Assembly (NCBI GenBank): GCA_020137815.1
Contig: CM035351.1
Location: forward strand, 2,356,001-2,420,000
Reading direction: 5' to 3'
DNA: 64,000 nt
Origin: Hormiphora californensis
Taxonomy: Eukaryota; Animalia; Ctenophora
How positions within the stretch are numbered: the first letter of the stretch is position 1; each line of letters opens with the position of its first letter. The position numbers were made by a program, and so were the translations under genes. The notes below the pieces were generated by a model, which was given only the letters and a program-made list of their open reading frames with translations, searched no databases and had not been told where the DNA came from. This document shows positions 37,583 to 47,553 of the stretch, piece after piece.

Positions 37583-38447
37583 TAACTTTAACCCAAAATT
37601 ATATTGTTAGGCAACTAATTTACCGCAACTTTAAAGAAAAAAGCTTTACACCAATTGCAGACAACGGCCATCATTCAAAATCCTTTGCATTGCAATTCGC
37701 AAACGCCTTCTGATTGCTCAAGCAAGGTTCTAGCTTCGGAGTTCTGTCGGGCAGAATCTGCACGGAGGCCGGTCCTATACCCCTGCTTCTACTCTGTGGC
37801 TGTATGCAAGCATTCAAAAGGAACCCGAATTTACAGGATGTACCATAGGTCAAGGACACGGAGGGCAAGGCTCTCTACTTCTGCGACCTGTCACCTGCGT
37901 CTACTTGGCTTAAGTTTACGCACAATTTATCACAAAGTCACACAATTAACATATAACTTCGTCCCGCTCTTACACCGTACACCAATAAAAGTGATACAAG
38001 GCTGAGATGTGAAATTATACAGTTCACATCAGCGGTTTCCTAAGCAGTTTAAAGTTTAAACAATACAGACAGACAATAGAGACAGTGATGCACATCCTAG
38101 TAGCATTAGATGCACAAAAACGAGGAACAAGGAAAAATAGAAAACTGAAACGAGGTAATGAACAAACAAAGCAAGCAGACAGACAAAAAACAGGCTGTAT
38201 GCAAGCCATCAATCAATCAATCAATCAATCAAAATGTACATTTAACATCCCGCTTTTTGACTAATAATAGTAAGAGTGATAAACGTCATACAAAGTTACT
38301 CGATGAGCGCCAGAGCACTCCTACCAGCCTTCTAAAGCGGTGAACCCAAAGTGGAAAAGAAAGATGATATGAGTGATAATAATAGCCCAGATATGATGAT
38401 AATAAGTAGATAATAAATTAATGTTTTTGATTAAGTAAGAAATAATT

Positions 38448-38958
38448 GGGGGGGGGGGGGCCTGCCGCAAGAATCTCATGCCTCATTGGCGATTTTCAGG
38501 GTAGCTGGGATTTTTGAGATTTTCGATTTTTGTCTAAAAAACGTGGGATTTTTGAGATTTTTGAGGCAAATTTGCGATTTTTCGGGGAAAACCCAAAAAT
38601 TTTTCTCAAAAATCTCATAGAAAGCAAAAATTTCCATTCGAAAATTTGGAATAGAAACAATCCTTGTGTTTTTCTACCAAAAATCAAAATTCTGAATAGA
38701 AATGTTCCTTGTGTTCTAGTACAAAAGTTAATGTGAAGCTAAAACATGAAATCTACCAATTTAAAATTCTAAACTGGTATTATGATTCAGTTTTAAGCTA
38801 AAAAATATGTCGAAAAACTGAGTATTGGCAGCCAAAATTGTGCCAATTTACCACAAAAATCTCAAACGTAATTGAGCAAATTTTCCCAAAAATCTCAAAA
38901 ATCTCATCGGCCGAAAAGAGGGTAGCTGAGATTTTTGCGGCAGGCCCCCCCCCCCCCC
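38448..38958. mobile_element. MITE inserted in the LINE 3'UTR
   Basis: TIRs (g)n-cctgccgcaa.aatctca / tgagatttttgcggcagg-(c)n; TSD ataatt at 38442-38447 and 38959-38964. Confidence 0.85.
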
Positions 38959-40500
38959 ATAATTATATGTATGAAAATATATGTTAAATCAATGTAATAA
39001 GTTACATAGAAAAGAGATTAATCACGAAATAAAAGAGTGGAGCGAATCACTGCTCCGTAATTCTGAAGCTCAATGCATGCAGCGGACGTATAGATGTACA
39101 CATAAATTAATGGGACAGTCCATCCTAAACACCATACGACTTTTCAAACAGGTGGGTTTTGAGTCTGGATTTGAAAGTTTCCTCGTCTGAACAGTTGCGA
39201 ATGTTAATGGGAAGTTGATTCCAGATCCTCGGGCCTGAAACTTGAAATGCACGCTGTGTGGTTTTGTACTTGGTTGAAAAATCCCTTTCCAAAAGGGTCA
39301 GATCACCGTCGTGACGTAGTGATTTTCCTTTCCTCTGACGTTTGTTTATTAGATTTTGAAGATATTGTGGTGCTTGATTGTTTAGACACTTGAAAACCAT
39401 GAGACAGATTTTAAATTCAATTCTAGCATCAACTGGAAGAAATTGTAATTGCCGCCTAAGGTCTGTAACTCCCCTCCACTGCCACCTTCCAAACACAAAG
39501 CGAGTCGCTGCGTTCTGCACTTTTTGCAATCTGGCAATGTCACATTTATCGGCACCAATTAGTAAGCCGTTACAGTAGTCCAGACGAGAGTGGATGAGCG
39601 AATGGACCAGCTGAACCTTGTGTCTTCTCTGTAGCTTGTTTCCAATTCTACGGAGGTTGACAAGGTTATAGTTACATTCCTTCACAACTTTTGAAACATG
39701 TTCTTTCATGGTAAGTTTTTCATCAAAGACAACACCCAGATTCTTGGCACTCTGGGAGGGAAAGATGGTCGCCGAGAGGGGTCCTTCCTCATCACACAAT
39801 GTTAGAGGATCTGAATAGTCCAGTGGGTTTGGACTATTATCAGTTCGAGAGGAAATGAACATCAACTCAGTTTTTGCCGGGTTTAGTTTCAGGTAACTGG
39901 ATGCCATCCATGCTTTAATTTCCAAGAAACATTTTTTGAGTTGAGACTCACATTCGTTCCAGGCATCGTTTGTGAAGCTGACATACAGCTGAGAATCGTC
40001 AGCGTAGAGGTGAATCTTGGTTTTGTGTCGTGCCGCTATAGCTTCCAAGTCCTTAGTGAACAGAATAAAAAGTAACGGACCGAGGATGGATCCCTGCGGT
40101 ACACCTATTTCGATGTTAACAGGAAGTGATTGACTTTTGCCAATTTTGACAACTGCTACCCGGTCTTTCAGATATGACTGGAACCACTCAAGAGCCACCC
40201 CTTTGATTCCATACATCTTGTCCAATCGGCTAATGAGAATGTTGTGAGGGACTGTGTCGAAAGCAGCGGATAGATCCAAGAGGAGAAGAACGGCCTTATT
40301 CCGTTTATCAGTGAGAACTAGCAGATCATTGAATATACGTAGTGTTGCTGTTTCACAGGAGTGCTTCTGTCTGTATGCCGATTGAACTGAGGCAAGAAGT
40401 CCATGGCTTTCCAGATGTTAGCTGTAATCTGTAGAGCAACGCACTTTTCAATAATCTTTGAGATAAAACTCAGATTAGAAATCGGTCGATAACTTGACAT

Positions 40501-41464
40501 GTTTTATTAGTAGAGGGGTTGTAGCACCGGGAGGTAATGAGTAAACACACACACACGCATTGAGCAAGCTCAATGTTTAGCTATTCTCCGGCTGGGTATA
40601 GGGCTGAGGTACTGGCAAGATATAGTAGGATCGCTACTGCCCACATGTCAAGTCTATTCGGATATACAAGTTTAAAAGGTTGGGGGGTCACAGGGACCGT
40701 CTTAGCTTCGCTCCCCGTTAACATTGCCTGTAACCGGGGGTCCACTAAGCTCTCATATATACTCGGCCATTACTCCCAACCACTAGTAGTGGTTTTCAGT
40801 ACCTCTTATACTGGTAATTCCGTATAGAAACAATCCTTGTGTTTTAATAGCGATCACTCCGTATATCTTGCACTGACCCAGTATTACCACACATTAATTG
40901 TGCAATTGGCACTATGGGATTTCTCCACTGCGGCCGGCACTGTGAGTAATCAGCCACTATATAAGCTACATCTTGGTTGCTAACCAGTCAATACATTAGT
41001 AGAGGGGTTGTAGCACCGGGAGGTAATGAGTAAACACACACACACGCATTGAGCAAGCTCAATGTTTAGCTATTCTCCGGCTGGGTATAGGGCTGAGGTA
41101 CTGGCAAGATATAGTAGGATCGCTACTGCCCACATGTCAAGTCTATTCGGATATACAAGTTTAAAAGGTTGGGGGGTCACAGGGACCGTCTTAGCTTCGC
41201 TCCCCGTTAACATTGCCTGTAACCGGGGGTCCACTAAGCTCTCATATATACTCGGCCATTACTCCCAACCACTAGTAGTGGTTTTCAGTACCTCTTATAC
41301 TGGTAATTCCGTATAGAAACAATCCTTGTGTTTTAATAGCGATCACTCCGTATATCTTGCACTGACCCAGTATTACCACACATTAATTGTGCAATTGGCA
41401 CTATGGGATTTCTCCACTGCGGCCGGCACTGTGAGTAATCAGCCACTATATATATATATATATA
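40501..41464. mobile_element. Head-to-tail ~1.9-mer of a 489-bp non-coding unit inserted in LINE ORF2, with (TA)n at one end
   Basis: Identical copies offset by 489 bp. Host ORF2 rejoins as LDSNS|MSSYRPISNL when the insert is removed (target AT). Confidence 0.9.
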
Positions 41465-43355
41465 TGCTGTTCGAGTCGAGTCCTTTCCCTTTGTAAACCG
41501 GTCGTATCATGGCATTTTTCAATGTAGAGGGAAACACTCCACTAGTAAGGCTACCGTTGACAATAGCCAATATTATCGGCATCAGTTCGTGGATGCATTC
41601 TCCGACCAGTTTTGATGGTAGAGGGTCAAGGTCACATTGTTTGTAGTTCATTGATCGAACAATTTTAACTAGCTCCTCACTAGATAATGCACGAAAGGAA
41701 TCGAGTTGTGGTGGGCTGGGAGTTTCGGGTCCTCTGGTGACGTCTTCTGTCCGTAGTTTCTTGATGTCCAAATATATTTTGTCCACTTTTTCCTTGAAAT
41801 ACTGAACGAATTTTTGACAGAGATCAACTGGGTCATCATGTTCCGGTAGTGTGCTCGGATTCTTCTCCTTGCCAAGCAATCCATTCGTAATTCGATATAT
41901 TACCGATTGGTCATTCCCAGCCTCTTCCAGTTTCCTCCGATAGTAGTCGTCTCTGGTTGAAGTGATGAACCGTGATGCCTCTTTCGCCTCGCGTCTGAGA
42001 TTCCTCAGAGATTCAACCAGTATCTGCGAGGGAACATCTCTCTTCAGTAACGCCTTGAAATCACGCTCGGCTTTCCTGCGTCGCCGTTTTGCCGCCTGAC
42101 AGTCACTATTAAACCAGGGAGGGCTAGGATTTTCTGGAACAACCTTATTCTCAATCGGGGCAAGTTCGTCCAAAAACTCGGACAGAAGGTCATCATAGAG
42201 TTTAATGATCTCAACCAGTTCACTAGGGAATTCTTCTGTGTCGCAGAGTGGGGATTTCAGTATGGTGCATCGAAGTTCATCCACATCCAAATTCTTGATA
42301 TCCCGTCGTTGAATGGAGATGAAGTCCTTCCGCTGAATTGGAGCCCCGATTGGAAGGTTAAACGAAACCAGTGCGTGGTCAGGAGCTGCAGGAGTCATCT
42401 CTACAGCAAGATTTGATATTGGAAGAGCATCAGGGAGATTCTTCGTGAGAACTAGATCGAGTATTCCACCTGAGACATGAGTGGCGGTGTTTACCGACTG
42501 GTGAAAGTAGTGATCATCAAGGAGTCCACAGAAGGATTTGGCAAAACTATCATGTATGTTCTGTACATGTATGTTGAAATCACCAGTTATGACGACCTCT
42601 CCCGACCTTTCAGCCAGACCATGAAGTAGTGTCTCGAACTCCTCCAAGAAAACCGAATGGGATTGGGATGGGGAGCGGTATACACCAAGTAATCGAAGCG
42701 GCATGCAGTTTGAATGAGTCAGCAATAATTCAATACATTCCATTGATGAGAAAGAGTGATTGAACTGAGTGAAATGAAAGGAGTTTTTCATGAGAATAGC
42801 TACACCACCCCCTCTAGAACCACGTGCAACACTAACTAACCTATACCCAAGCTCACTAATTTGACTCTCAATAGCACTCTCAATAGCATGTAACCAAGTT
42901 TCGGTCAAACAAACAGCATCAATATCATTGTCTATGATAGTCAGTAAAATATCATCAACCTTGTTTCTCAGAGAAAAACAGTTCAGAGTGGCCAACTTTA
43001 CCTCTACTCGTTTTTTGACCTTGTAGCTTCATATATAGCTTTGTATGCCGGACACTCAGTGCTGTTTGCCCGGTGGGAGACATCGTCCTTTGACTTTCCA
43101 TTCAGGGAACAGTTTTTTTTTTTTTTGTTTTGGGGCATTAAGCTAAGGCGTACCAAGTCTCATACCACCCGGGTATAGACGGCATAGCCTGGAACCCTCC
43201 GTACGAACTCCCTTGAAAATTCAAGGGAGAGCAGTGCACATTGGAGGGCCCTACGCTTGTCTTGTGTCTGTCTTGGTCAGTCTAGATAGTTAAAAACTGA
43301 TCATAATAATACATAGATTTCAATGATTACGCAAGCTTTATCCTATAAAGTTACA

Positions 43356-43618
43356 GGGTCTGGAACAAGGTATCGTTTTGCCTTTGAGAGTTTCTTGAGT
43401 TTAGTTTGGTCTGGAACAAGGTAACGTTTTGCCTTTGAGAGTTTCTTGAGTTTAGTTTGGTCTGGAACAAGGTAACTTTTTGCCTTTGTGAGTGTCTTGA
43501 GTTTAGTTTGGTCTGGAACAAGGTAACGTTTTGCCTTTGTGAATGTCTTGAGTTTAGTTTGGTCTGGAACAAGGTAACGTTTTGCCTTTGTGAATGTCTT
43601 GAGTTTGGGTCTGGAATC
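43356..43618. repeat. 51-bp VNTR (~5 copies) inside the composite retroposon
   Basis: ggtctggaacaaggtaacgttttgcctttg...gagtttagttt unit. Confidence 0.92.
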
Positions 43619-44043
43619 CAGATGTATACCGTGTTTTGAATAGTCAATTACATTCACAATATAAACTTTACACAATCTGTGAACAGACAATACGAACAGG
43701 TGAACTTACAGAATTTTGATGGATGATTGTTACCGTGATGTTGGTTGGTGATGGGAATGGAGATGAGAGCCGAGAGGTGTATCCTTTTCCGTTAGAGATA
43801 AAGATAAACGAGAACAATCAAACACAAATAAGGGGTAGGACAGATTGTAGCACCACTAAAGTGTAAAATGTTCTAGAAGACAATTCGGATGAGATAGATA
43901 AGAACATTTGTTAGTTGTTACACGCGATAAGCGACTTAGTGCACCAAAACACAAGGATTGTCTCTGTAGTGTGGTGTTTAGCAATGTCCGCTATATTGGG
44001 AGAGGTGGGTGGGGGAGGGCGGGTGGGGGTGGGGCGGGGGGTA

Positions 44044-45616
44044 ATATTGGACAAAAATGTAGCTGTAATTTAGTGATGAGACCAGGCCAGGCCCGAGAGA
44101 CAGTTCAGTGGTAACTGGGAGGTCATGTGTGATGGAAATGAGAACTAAAGACAGATTTGAGTTGTATTTTATTGAGGAAAACAGCCCTTTTTGGTGTCTG
44201 AGACAAGCAAAAGTGAAACGAAATGCAACATAACGAACGAGTAATGAATAGAATTCTGCTCTGTGACTTGTTAGTGCTCCTTTATAAAACACGCAATGGC
44301 AAAGTACAAAGTTTCGCAAATTTAATTTAATGCGAAATTCCAAAGTTTTGGTCGATTTCGGCCAAAATTGCTGCCCTAAACTAACAATTGGACTGTGCGT
44401 TGCCGGGGAGACTGCTCGCTGGTGACTGAGAGATCATATGTTCTCGAATATTGGTACTTGAGGCGGATTTAAGTTGCATTTTAGTGTGGGGAAGAGGGGA
44501 ATATTGGACAAAAATGTAGCTGTAATTTAGTGATGAGACCAGGCCAGGCCCGAGAGACAGTTCAGAGGTAACTGGGAGGTCATGTGTGATGGAAATGAGA
44601 ACTAAAGACAGATTTGAGTTGTATTTTATTGAGGAAAACAGCCCTTTTTGGTGTCTGAGACAAGCAAAAGTGAAACGAAATGCAACGTAACGAACGAGTA
44701 ATGAATAGAATTCTGCTCTGTGACTTGTTAGTGCTCCTTTATAAAACACGCAATGGCAAAGTACAAAGTTTCGCAAATTTAATTTAATGCGAAATTCCAA
44801 AGTTTTGGTCGATTTCGGCCAAAATTGCTGCCCTAAACTAACAATTGGACTGTGCGTTGCCGGGGAGACTGCTCGCTGGTGACTGAGAGATCATATGTTC
44901 TCGAATATTGGTACTTGAGGCGGATTTAAGTTGCATTTTAGTGTGGGGAAGAGGGGAATATTGGACAAAAATGTAGCTGTAATTTAGTGATGAGACCAGG
45001 CCAGGCCCGAGAGACAGTTCAGAGGTAACTGGGAGGTCATGTGTGATGGAAATGAGAACTAAAGACAGATTTGAGTTGTATTTTATTGAGGAAAACAGCC
45101 CTTTTTGGTGTCTGAGACAAGCAAAAGTGAAACGAAATGCAACGTAACGAACGAGTAATGAATAGAATTCTGCTCTGTGACTTGTTAGTGCTCCTTTATA
45201 AAACACGCAATGGCAAAGTACAAAGTTTCGCAAATTTAATTTAATGCGAAATTCCAAAGTTTTGGTCGATTTCGGCCAAAATTGCTGCCCTAAACTAACA
45301 ATTGGACTGTGCGTTGCCGGGGAGACTGCTCGCTGGTGACTGAGAGATCATATGTTCTCGAATATTGGTACTTGAGGCGGATTTAAGTTGCATTTTAGTG
45401 TGGGGAAGAGGGGAATATTGGACAAAAATGTAGCTGTAATTTAGTGATGAGACCAGGCCAGGCCCGAGAGACAGTTCAGAGGTAACTGGGAGGTCATGTG
45501 TGATGGAAATGAGAACTAAAGACAGATTTGAGTTGTATTTTATTGAGGAAAACAGCCCTTTTTGGTGTCTGAGACAAGCAAAAGTGAAACGAAATGCAAC
45601 GTAACGAACGAGTAAT
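44044..45616. repeat. 457-bp tandem monomers (3 full + 1 partial)
   Basis: Identical spurious ORF ends at 44381, 44838 and 45295 (period 457). Confidence 0.95.
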
Positions 45617-46787
45617 CTCAGGGAACAGTTTACACATGAAGGAATAAAGTCTGTGTTCGATTTTTCTGGACAGTCCTTTGATTCGTGGTTTTTTTGAGCA
45701 GTGTGCACACACTGAGTCTCGATCACAGCCTGCTGCTGAGTGATGGAAGCCTTGACACTTGTAGCACTGTAACACGTGTACTCTGTCGACAACGTTACAC
45801 GCAGTGTATCCAACGAAGACTACCCTCTGGCGAAGGAGTTGTCTCTTTGTTTGAGTGGGTAGGCGTAGACCGATGGTAGCGAGTTCAGGATTCCGATAGT
45901 TTTTTCTGTAAGACACAACATCCACAGCAATGCCCTGTAGTTCCGGATTCTTCTCCTGTAGGACTTCTATGATGATTTCACTTCGTTTTCGTCTATCGTC
46001 TTCTTGATTAATAGAATCAGAGATGGGAAAATTTAGGACCGTGAGTTTGCTTGTTGGATCTGATCTCACTCTTACTGTCTTGGTACGTAGACCCGTGCTA
46101 AGGGCGTCAGCTGCTTTCTGACCCTCACTCTCTGGTACGGTCACGATGACCAAGTTTTTCTTTTTGTCCATTCTTGACACTTTCGTCTTGGAGAGAGCAT
46201 TTTCACTTAACTTCTGGACCTCGTCGATATCAATCTCTTCACAGTCAATGTAGATTTTTCGCCACGGAAGTGCTGGTTTGGGAATATCACTGAAAGACGG
46301 TTTAGGTGGTAGGGTAGGAGTGCGGACTGGCGTAAGGGTTGCAGCAGCAGCAGCAGCAGCAGTAGCATGAGCATATGGCGCTGCCTGGTTCAGAGGTATC
46401 ATCGCAGCAGTAATTCTGTCGGTTACTGCAGATAGTATATCTTCCTTGAATTTTTCTAGATGATTGTTCATGTCTTCTATAACATTGAGATTATCGAGAG
46501 GGTCATTTTCATTGGACGAAGGAGTTTGGCGAGTGTTGAGAGCTAGAGCATCAGTAAGTGCACATACCGCCTGGTATGACTGTTTTAGCAGTGCCCACAA
46601 TGATTTTCGGTCTGGGTTTCTCGGAGGAAGTTCAGAATCCTCGTCCAACAGGTGAAGAAGGTTCTCGTTGATCAGCGCTTGTTGGAGTTGGTGTGTGGGA
46701 TCAGGGACATGGGAGGAAGAAGCGGCTGCCCCGTCCATTAGCGTCGGACTGCCCATAAGGGGCGGTTCCATAAACCTAGGGCAAGAT

Positions 46788-46832
46788 CTCAATAAATAGT
46801 TTTACGTTGTAGTTGATGAAAGTTTGAAGCCC
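46788..46832 (-). other. Spliced-leader-like sequence at the LINE 5' end
   Basis: GGGCTTCAAACTTTCATCAACTACAACGTAAAACTATTTATTGAG resembles ctenophore SL exons as recalled (..TTCAAACTTTTCAACACTAC...ATTAATTTGAG); the comparison is from memory. Confidence 0.5.
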
Positions 46833-47553
46833 TTTGTTTAAAGGCCAAGATGTGTCTCTTCGCCTAAGTTGCAGCCCCTGTATCAGGCCGTCAAAAACCC
46901 GTGCAATCGTGGTTTGCATCACATGCGAAAGCGTTCCCCTTACATTTTACAAGTTTGAAGTTTCAGAGGACAAAAAACAGTTTTTGAACTTCAAAACTTT
47001 GGAACAAAATTTCGCAGTGCAGTTTGCGAAAAATTTATGATGAAAAAAAGTCAACGCCATGCAACGCAAAAGTAAAATATTTCGCGCGTGACGTCAAAAT
47101 CAAACAAATGCAGCGCATATTATTAAAAACTGAGCCGAAAATAAAGTTTTTATTTTGAAGTTTGTCTTTTTCAAAATTTTGATTTTTTTAAACCGTTTTT
47201 TTTCTTTAAAAACTGAAAAGTCCAAACTCCAAAATCAACTTTCTTGAAGCCCCGAATTCCATTATTGTGACCTGCGCTGAGCAGCGTTTCGTAACCGATT
47301 ACCGGCGGATGCACTTAATGCTGAAATGTTTTAAATGACTGAGCATTCCTCTGTGGTCTGTAGTCTGCCTCGGCAGTCGGCCCTCAGGACTCCCGACTCG
47401 ACCGGCGACCGCTCAGCAGTCACCGCTGGCCTGTGTACTGGCGTTAGTTAATTTCGCAGTTCGTACTTGTGTCAGACTGCCTCATGCTTGTTTCTTGTAC
47501 TAATGTATCATTTAATTTGCTTAAATTTATGACTGGTTAGCTGCGAAGTGAAA

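Follow-up and report, generated by a model that had tools for sequence, protein, structure and literature searches.

In mouse and rat, the L1 subfamilies A, Tf and Gf carry head-to-tail monomers at their 5' ends, with the first unit truncated and the number of units variable. Among non-autonomous elements, full-length copies of the SVA type have an extra, untemplated G at the 5' end, and their mobilisation takes place in trans (PMC3287187, PMC4432496). EhSINE1 of Entamoeba is 500–600 bp long, has about 70 bp in common with EhLINE1 and has no 5' promoter array, and the trypanosomatid elements RIME and NARTc arose by deletion from their LINE, with which they have both ends in common (PMC2996970). 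Ctenophore transposable elements are barely described, and in the Hormiphora californensis genome paper they are given only as tandem-repeat and EDTA totals (PMC8527503).

The window analysed here is a stretch of 64,000 nt from the ctenophore H. californensis (contig CM035351.1, positions 2,356,001 to 2,420,000). An insert within it is likely a young copy of a family of non-coding, non-autonomous non-LTR retroposons, on which neither sequence search nor word search returned earlier findings. The element is probably a Pol II-type retroposon that depends on a LINE tail and carries monomers like those of mouse L1.

The likeness to mouse and rat L1 lies in the tandem 5' monomers, the truncated first unit, the variable number of units and what would be a repeated promoter inside the transcript. 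The monomers here are however found on a non-coding element and not on an autonomous LINE, the units of 457, 311 or about 70 bp have no similarity to the partner LINE, and the first monomer is truncated at the start site instead of at variable points. The initial annotation had described the insert as an SVA-like composite. Functionally this holds, as the element resembles SVA, LAVA, PVA and FVA in being non-coding, kilobase-sized and probably transcribed by Pol II, with an internal VNTR, poly(A), TSDs, an untemplated 5' G and apparent mobilisation in trans (PMC3287187, PMC4432496). The composite part of the description does not, since the element was not assembled from unrelated repeats, its VNTR and tail corresponding to a single LINE 3' UTR. 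SVA is moreover unrelated in sequence, consists of Alu-like and SINE-R pieces, is specific to hominoids and has neither an L1 tail nor a defined promoter array, whereas the VNTR and tail found here in a ctenophore match the partner LINE. The element is thus SVA-like by analogy only. EhSINE1/EhLINE1 and other stringent LINE/SINE pairs are similar in that the element is non-coding, polyadenylated and not tRNA-derived, has only its 3' end in common with the LINE and contains variable short internal repeats (PMC2996970); the differences are the 150–490 bp common to the LINE, the element length of 1–9 kb and the tandem 5' monomers. RIME/ingi and NARTc/L1Tc are likewise non-autonomous partners of RNase H LINEs with poly(A) tails, but here the 3' end alone is common to the LINE.

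A wider reading, which we consider evenly balanced between right and wrong, is that these elements form a non-coding superfamily in an early-branching animal. It would carry its own portable Pol II promoter in three monomer types, parasitise a near-extinct endonuclease/RT/RNase H LINE via the 3' UTR tail of that LINE and vastly outnumber it, with an integration machinery common to both making long TSDs of up to about 0.9 kb. If true, an L1-style monomer promoter would be described for the first time in a non-autonomous element. On the main reading already, two devices described so far mainly in mammals, the tandem monomer promoter and the large Pol II-driven non-coding LINE parasite, would have evolved independently here. 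One full-length LINE together with dozens of very young non-coding copies makes for a compact system, which is therefore suited to the study of tail recognition by RT, of gain and loss in monomer arrays and of TSD-length control. Arrays of up to 8 kb and dispersed TATA/start units are also relevant to ctenophore annotation, to apparent promoters and to lncRNAs.

A precise insertion in a host LINE

Direct reading and Tandem Repeats Finder placed the 2.5-kb insert at positions 43102–45631 of the window, on the minus strand, as a precise insertion. The features, from the host LINE to the far end of the insert, are as follows.

38208–46832, minus strand: host LINE, with ORF1 carrying Cys knuckles, endonuclease and RT
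45618–45631, minus strand: 5' TSD, AAACTGTTCCCTGA, of which the second copy is at 43102–43115
45617, minus strand: one untemplated G separating the TSD from monomer 1, at a position where the monomer carries C
45160–45616, minus strand: monomer 1 (457 bp), whose first base is A+1 of TTC/ATTACTCG, the inferred start of transcription
44703–45159, minus strand: monomer 2, with TATAAA at 45200–45195, 41 nt upstream of A+1 (45159)
44246–44702, minus strand: monomer 3, with TATAAA at 44743–44738 upstream of A+1 (44702)
44029–44245, minus strand: last monomer, truncated (positions 1–217), with TATAAA at 44286–44281 upstream of A+1 (44245)
43607–44028, minus strand: C-rich tract (about 43998–44038), then the family-defining non-coding core (Tandem Repeats Finder)
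43357–43606, minus strand: 51-bp VNTR of 4.9 units, homologous to the VNTR of 2.9 units within the 3' UTR of the partner LINE
43284–43356, minus strand: subfamily-specific spacer, different from the LINE spacer
43132–43283, minus strand: 3' tail common to the autonomous LINE L033 (97.7% over 172 bp)
43116–43131, minus strand: poly(A) tail, A4CA11, with up to 3 further A common to the TSD
43102–43115, minus strand: 3' TSD, repeat of the 14-bp AAACTGTTCCCTGA

The insertion point lies inside the third Cys motif of the host ORF1 (CVNCSL/NGKSK...H...C). A 40-nt empty site, made up of the 5' flank, one copy of the TSD and the 3' flank, had seven exact matches elsewhere in the genome, while its reversed sequence, used as control, had none. 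All seven matches are paralogous, uninterrupted copies of the host LINE in which the 14-bp target occurs once each, and the element in the window is a true, precise insertion. The exact 14-bp TSD at the insert ends, the single extra non-matching G at 45617 and the hairpin-rich 3' region followed by poly(A), all noted in the initial annotation, were borne out by direct reading, as was the splitting of the third zinc knuckle of the host ORF1. Upstream of the insert, the host ORF1 has a further 1-nt frame change in an A-run. The host LINE itself was considered as the partner and rejected, as its 3' end, read by eye only, appears to be (GATT)n without poly(A) and has no sequence in common with the element.

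The insert has no substantial ORF, the longest starting with ATG being 32 aa in sense and 47 aa in antisense, and its bacterial-code ORFs gave no Pfam match above threshold. The published spliced-leader sequence, which occurs 143 times genome-wide, was absent from the window at up to 3 mismatches. An Rfam scan of positions 42000–47000 on both strands at E≤1 returned no tRNA, 7SL, 5S or ribozyme, which together with 22 runs of at least four T argues against transcription by Pol III and against ribozyme processing. A strict SINE was rejected on the same T-runs and absence of Rfam Pol III matches at E≤1, and on the length of 1–9 kb.

Copies across the genome

The family comprises dozens to more than 200 copies with differing flanks. 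At least 44 genome matches were obtained for the 3' end and at least 158 for the monomer, over all chromosomes. The core gave 236 first-look candidates, and the 40 that were scored all had 83–100% identity, in most cases across the whole 412 bp. Monomer number ranged from 0.5 to 17.4 per copy and VNTR number from 2.5 to 4.9 units, with element lengths of 1–9 kb and arrays of up to 8 kb. All tails terminate in ...TTAATGCCCC, followed by A-runs of varying length and unique flanks. TSDs of 11–17 bp were found in 13 insertions, mostly at T/AA(A); leading A residues of the TSDs are inseparable from poly(A). Overall, TSD length is bimodal, with one class at 11–17 bp and another between 174 and about 890 bp. 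Dispersed copies with poly(A), distinct TSDs and variable monomer and VNTR counts had been predicted from the window copy, and each was seen. No ORF of 150 aa or more was present in the longest relatives, and at no fewer than 8 loci where monomer arrays were read into the downstream sequence no ORF came next, only the non-coding core. Scans of metagenomes with the tail hairpin and with the promoter block yielded no relatives.

The same copies could have arisen as repeated retrocopies (processed pseudogenes) of one or a few host lncRNA genes, dead on arrival and devoid of a portable promoter. Absence of coding capacity, poly(A) and TSDs would be found in any retrocopy, some copies are very similar (99.3–99.5%), which is compatible with a single master gene, and copies that consist of only half a monomer have no upstream promoter. 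We nevertheless consider this origin unlikely. The family contains several diverged subfamilies (at 99, 94, 87 and 81% identity), monomers of 457 bp, 311 bp and about 70 bp and at least two tail types; the LINE-derived tail is far better conserved than the body, and 1–16 complete promoter-plus-start units are retained in the copies.

Constant 5' ends and the monomer array

The 5' array of the window copy consists of 3.45 head-to-tail monomers of 457 bp that are 99% alike (45616–44029; Tandem Repeats Finder). This agrees with the initial annotation, in which about 3.4 such units were recognised with the 5' end on the A of an initiator-like motif. A TATAAA box precedes every internal start, its first base lying 41 nt upstream. 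Monomer 1 is without an upstream promoter because its first base is the inferred start. A last monomer truncated to positions 1–217 was found in every copy, and many matches span 1–217.

The 5' ends of the copies proved non-random, as the initial annotation had anticipated. In all 14 independent copies with a resolved 5' end, the end fell within −6 to +12 of one position of the monomer, mostly at A+1 or A+4; on the 457-nt unit the ends were at +1 (n = 7), +4 to +6 (n = 5), +12 (n = 1) and −3 (n = 1). In each of the three 5' array types, too, the element begins at one fixed place within the repeat. An untemplated 5' G is a mark of a reverse-transcribed cap. Such a G, or AG, was present in six or seven of the 14 copies, unambiguously so in the window copy and in L039, L042, L025, L029 and L030. 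In L040 an 8-nt filler ending in G precedes the start, and in four copies the preceding G could be derived from the target. Matches in RNA were confined to marine metatranscriptome contigs of 75–222 nt, which are weak and uninformative on starts or strand. One of these contigs carries A14 and a foreign flank and may thus be DNA or read-through, and an RNA run labelled H. californensis gave no match to the element.

That the monomers are putative promoters with their starts is suggested indirectly, by where the 5' ends lie, by the additional G, by TATAAA at −41 and by the pattern of conservation. The best-conserved monomer block across subfamilies is −107 to −48, and the 311-bp monomer variant retains the promoter half and about 60 nt of leader. 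Weighing against this, the −41 position of TATAAA exceeds the spacing usual in metazoans by about 10 nt, and some monomers carry GATAAA or GAAAAA in its place.

HDV-like ribozymes are established at the 5' ends of LINEs. Constant ends could accordingly result from RNA processing, for example by a self-cleaving ribozyme in each monomer as in R2, RTE and L1Tc, or from a fixed stop of reverse transcription, in which case the monomers would not be promoters. Such an origin would account for ends that are constant across copies, and the RNA contigs give no direct evidence of transcription starts. It is however highly improbable, as the Rfam scan (E≤1, both strands) found no ribozyme, an untemplated G would be unexpected on a cleaved 5'-OH end, the two starts lie 3 nt apart and each on an A, and a conserved TATAAA block precedes them. 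Efficient cleavage in each monomer would further be incompatible with the arrays of 3–17 monomers in new copies.

A functionless, satellite-like expansion of the 5' array, with transcription driven by flanking host promoters or by an internal leader promoter as in the Drosophila jockey and I elements, we consider very unlikely. The leader at +14 to +43 is also fairly conserved, many half-monomer copies start at +1 (L037, L039–L042) and monomers within a copy are homogenised to 99–100%. It is nevertheless the upstream half (−107 to −48) that is the best-conserved part of the monomer, this half is kept in the 311-bp variant from which most of the leader is deleted, and the start point within the repeat is fixed in three 5' array types.

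The 3' tail and a partner LINE

In the 3' tail of the window copy there is a 9-bp hairpin as well as an invariant one, ATACCCGGGTGGTATGAG; the hairpin CTCCCTTGAA-TT-TTCAAGGGAG was read ahead of poly(A). Tail identity is 93–98% even where bodies are only 76–88% identical. The tail hairpin is invariant also in the second tail type, which with 128 candidates is commoner than the first; a LINE was identified for the first type only.

This LINE, L033, is 6.3 kb long, is flanked by a 13-bp TSD and encodes endonuclease plus RT (864 aa) and RNase H. One full-length copy, at locus L033, and one 5'-truncated copy were found. The last 491 bp of L033 match the tails of L031 and L032 at 96.5–99% identity; against the window copy, identity is 97.7% over the last 172 bp. 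The initial annotation had proposed a search for an autonomous LINE sharing the 3' end or the monomer; L033 shares the 3' end, and the monomers are without similarity to it. Judged by sequence homology, the 51-bp VNTR and the terminal 150–490 bp of the elements come from the 3' UTR of this endonuclease/RT/RNase H LINE, and tracing them to it is what is new here. With no more than 490 terminal bp shared, an origin of the element as a deletion derivative of L033 was rejected.

Based on these results we infer the following course of events. RNA would start within a 457-bp monomer, on either A+1 or A+4 of TTCATTACTCG and some 41 nt downstream of TATAAA, through Pol II promoter activity, and would be capped. 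The transcript would then run through the remaining monomers, the non-coding core, the 51-bp VNTR and the structured 3' tail to poly(A). L033 LINE proteins would recognise the common tail, mobilising the RNA in trans, and would insert it by target-primed reverse transcription at T/AA(A) sites. As the putative promoter occupies the 3' part of each monomer, the promoter of the first start would be lost in the new copy and that of every downstream monomer kept. A tandem array would thereby let the promoter travel inside the RNA that it drives, as happens in mouse L1.

The initial annotation had attributed the insertion to an L1-type enzyme. This was not supported, because the endonuclease of L033 matches Pfam PF14529 (2e-21) and the TRAS1 endonuclease, while L1 endonuclease chains gave no match to it above threshold. 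The RT is matched equally by R2 and L1 (about 1e-10), and the LINE also has RNase H. Relatives in the protein database are unnamed and at most 26% identical. Searches of PDB and Atlas did not settle the clade, and the partner LINE is not demonstrably of L1 type. No ORF1 was visible in L033, and the LINE may be inactive at present, though retroposon copies are as much as 99.3–99.5% alike. A foldback element is nested in its 5' region, and the reading frame for RT overlaps that for RNase H at a C7 run.

Structure and insertion site of the window copy

The window copy is a retroposon of about 2.5 kb on the minus strand (43102-45631), in which the longest ATG-initiated ORF spans 32 aa in sense and 47 aa in antisense and no Pfam match above threshold was found. 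Its parts are listed here in element order.

Features of the window copy
45631-45618, minus strand: 5' target-site duplication (TSD) AAACTGTTCCCTGA, read directly
45617, minus strand: single G between TSD and monomer, read directly
45616-44029, minus strand: 457-bp monomers, three complete plus a truncated fourth ending at position 217, 99% alike
Down to 43607, minus strand: C-rich tract, then unique core
43606-43357, minus strand: 51-bp repeat (VNTR), 4.9 units
Between VNTR and tail, minus strand: spacer, 73 bp
After the spacer, minus strand: structured tail, 152 bp, terminating in ...TTAATGCCCC
After the structured tail, minus strand: A-tail, A4CA11
43115-43102, minus strand: 3' TSD, same 14 bp

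The insertion point lies in ORF1 of a host LINE encoding endonuclease and reverse transcriptase (RT), within a CX2C...H...C motif. The empty site, composed of the 5' flank, one TSD and the 3' flank, was found seven times elsewhere in the genome at 40/40 nt, each match being a further copy of the host LINE, while the reversed control gave 0. The seven exact sites against none in the control identify the element as a precise insertion with a 14-bp duplication, which bears out the initial annotation of an exact TSD and an interrupted zinc-knuckle ORF1.

Other features of the host LINE were observed. Its ORF2 is interrupted at 40501-41464 by a dimer of a 489-nt unit between the endonuclease and RT parts, known here from the gap between the ORFs, and its 3' UTR carries, at 38450-38958 (minus reading), an insert of foldback or MITE-like type bounded by terminal inverted repeats (G12-CCTGCCGCAAAAATCTCA). 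Its start (46790-46832, minus strand) resembles, without identity, the published 44-nt spliced leader of H. californensis (PMC8527503), no match being found between the two at ≤3 mismatches. The leader itself occurs 143 times in the genome at ≤1 mismatch (control 0), at dispersed sites and with differences nearly all in the first two bases, in keeping with a genome of H. californensis or a very close relative.

Family copies and target-site duplications

Genome searches, the counts of which are lower bounds, returned at least 44 matches to the 3' 241 bp and at least 158 to the monomer, on all chromosomes. The core gave 236 first-look candidates, and all 40 of the 40 scored were 83-100% identical. 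The tails share one terminal sequence followed by A-runs of varied length and unrelated flanks. Copies carry 0.5-17.4 monomers, as counted in the assembly, and 2.5-4.9 VNTR units, so that the dispersed family with differing repeat counts that had been predicted was indeed recovered. Relative to the window copy, subfamilies fall at about 99, 94, 87 and 81% identity; a core group at 88% is known from coordinates alone. In one subfamily the monomer is 311 bp long and present 14.6 times. In another, at L034:1640-1985 (minus strand), the 457-bp monomers of the 5' array are replaced by units of about 70 bp, some 4.5 in number, and the element starts at a fixed point in the unit, with the usual ATTACTC leader 36 nt downstream. 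Within the window subfamily, copies from two other chromosomes match at 99.3-99.5% over 2.2 kb, and activity has therefore been recent. Sequencing runs containing parts of the element came from marine samples only. At locus L030 (C2:9033000-9042999) three family copies form a cluster, one nested in another in opposite orientation, and at L031:4743-8355 a 3.6-kb insertion with a 156-aa ORF occupies the spacer between VNTR and tail of a monomer element.

The T/AAA target and long TSD noted initially recur across the family: in 13 insertions the TSD measures 11-17 bp and the site is mostly T|AA(A), with the caveat that leading A residues merge with the A-tail. Very long duplications were found in five further insertions, each beginning directly after the poly(A). 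Four of the five extend to the 5' junction or fall ≤8 nt short of it, while that of L037 leaves the locus first. The length distribution thus looks bimodal, with 11-17 bp (n=13) against 174 to about 887 bp (n=5).

Very long duplications
L032 (C8): 174-177 bp
L036 (C4), truncated LINE copy: 200-201 bp
L030 (C2): 510-511 bp
L040 (C9): about 337 bp
L037 (C8): about 887 bp, runs off the locus

5' ends and inferred transcription start

Every monomer junction of the window copy reads TATAAA-N35-TTC|ATTACTCG, and the first base of the element is exactly the A of TTC|ATTACTCG (position 1), preceded by G in place of the monomer's C. The 5' junctions were read in 14 independent copies. The common start anticipated from the window was seen at position 1 in seven (window copy, L037, L039, L040, L041, L042 and L050) and at position 4 (to 6) in five (L025, L028, L029, L031 and the minus copy of L030), the remaining two lying at position 12 (plus copy of L030) and -3 (L032). 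As these ends are clustered within a 457-nt unit, random 5' truncation cannot explain the pattern. The non-matching G is likewise not confined to the window copy: a G found in neither target nor monomer precedes the start in L039, L042 and L025, as does AG in L029 and the plus copy of L030. L040 has an 8-nt filler whose last base is G. The -1 G of L041, L031 and L028 falls within the duplicated target; that of L037 may be either target-derived or untemplated, the junction end of the long duplication being off the locus.

From these sequences we infer that family transcripts are capped, of Pol II type and start at A+1 or A+4. Both Pol III transcription and ribozyme processing are disfavoured, and the capped Pol II-type reading favoured, by the kilobase length, the 22 runs of at least four T in the window element and the lack of any match in it to Pol III-type or ribozyme families in Rfam.

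Probable partner LINE, shared tail and proposed mechanism

Several tail matches start abruptly at one common point, and this was pursued in L033 (C4:3164000-3173000). A 6.3-kb element with a 13-bp TSD, AAGTGCTGAGGTA, and a poly(A) end was found there. Its endonuclease (PF14529, PF03372) and RT domains lie in an ORF of 864 aa, and downstream, in a different frame that overlaps the first over a C7 run, is an RNase H ORF; no ORF1 is visible in its 1.65-kb 5' region. The 3' UTR holds 2.9 units of the element's 51-bp repeat and the element's tail. The autonomous LINE sought through a shared 3' end was thus found, its last 172 bp being 97.7% identical to the window copy and its last 491 bp 96.5-99% identical to the monomer elements of L031 and L032, with no sequence in common beyond the 3' end. 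At full length this partner is single-copy (next relative, 47% protein identity), and a single 5'-truncated copy, in L036, has this tail too. The L1-type enzyme proposed initially was not supported: the partner's endonuclease resembles those of the TRAS1, jockey or I kind more than that of L1, and the element also encodes RNase H.

Tail identity stays at 93-98% even where the bodies of the copies have diverged to 76-88%, as would be expected of a tail recognised by the LINE reverse transcriptase. The 18-nt hairpin ATACCCGGGTGGTATGAG does not vary, even in an otherwise different second tail type, and occurs 66 times in the genome (control 0); there is too little tail variation for covariation.

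In the proposed mechanism, transcription would start at any monomer preceded by another monomer, the RNA taking along all downstream monomers. LINE proteins would then bind the tail and prime at a nicked T|AAA site, the cap being copied on occasion as the extra G. A round from the first usable start would leave the array one unit shorter, and arrays would therefore have to regrow, by unequal exchange or slippage. Regrowth is consistent with monomer identity of 99-100% within a copy versus 94% between subfamilies. Half-monomer copies would be promoterless unless the leader has an internal promoter, which is a rival explanation to a monomer promoter. In a comparison of five subfamilies, monomer variation was lowest in the 60 nt from -107 to -48, adjoining TATAAA at -41, and the 311-bp variant retains the upstream half, with its leader cut to about 60 nt.

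The element works like rodent L1 monomers, LINE-tail parasites such as EhSINE1 (PMC2996970) and SVA (PMC3287187, PMC4432496), as a cross of the three kinds and a member of none. The SVA-like composite design put forward at first accordingly holds as to workings but not membership, the VNTR and tail matching the 3' UTR of the partner LINE. A non-exhaustive literature search yielded no description of such an element from ctenophores, nor of monomer promoters on any non-autonomous element.

The second tail type (L025:9705-9847) is about 80% like the window-type tail, the invariant hairpin being common to both. No LINE with this tail was found among candidates known as coordinates only; it occurs on the 94% monomer subfamily and gave 128 first-look candidates, many 100% identical. 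Nested in the partner LINE's 5' region (L033:2616-3072) is a 457-bp foldback element whose inverted ends span about 125 bp, for which 649 first-look candidates were obtained genome-wide at about 90% identity.
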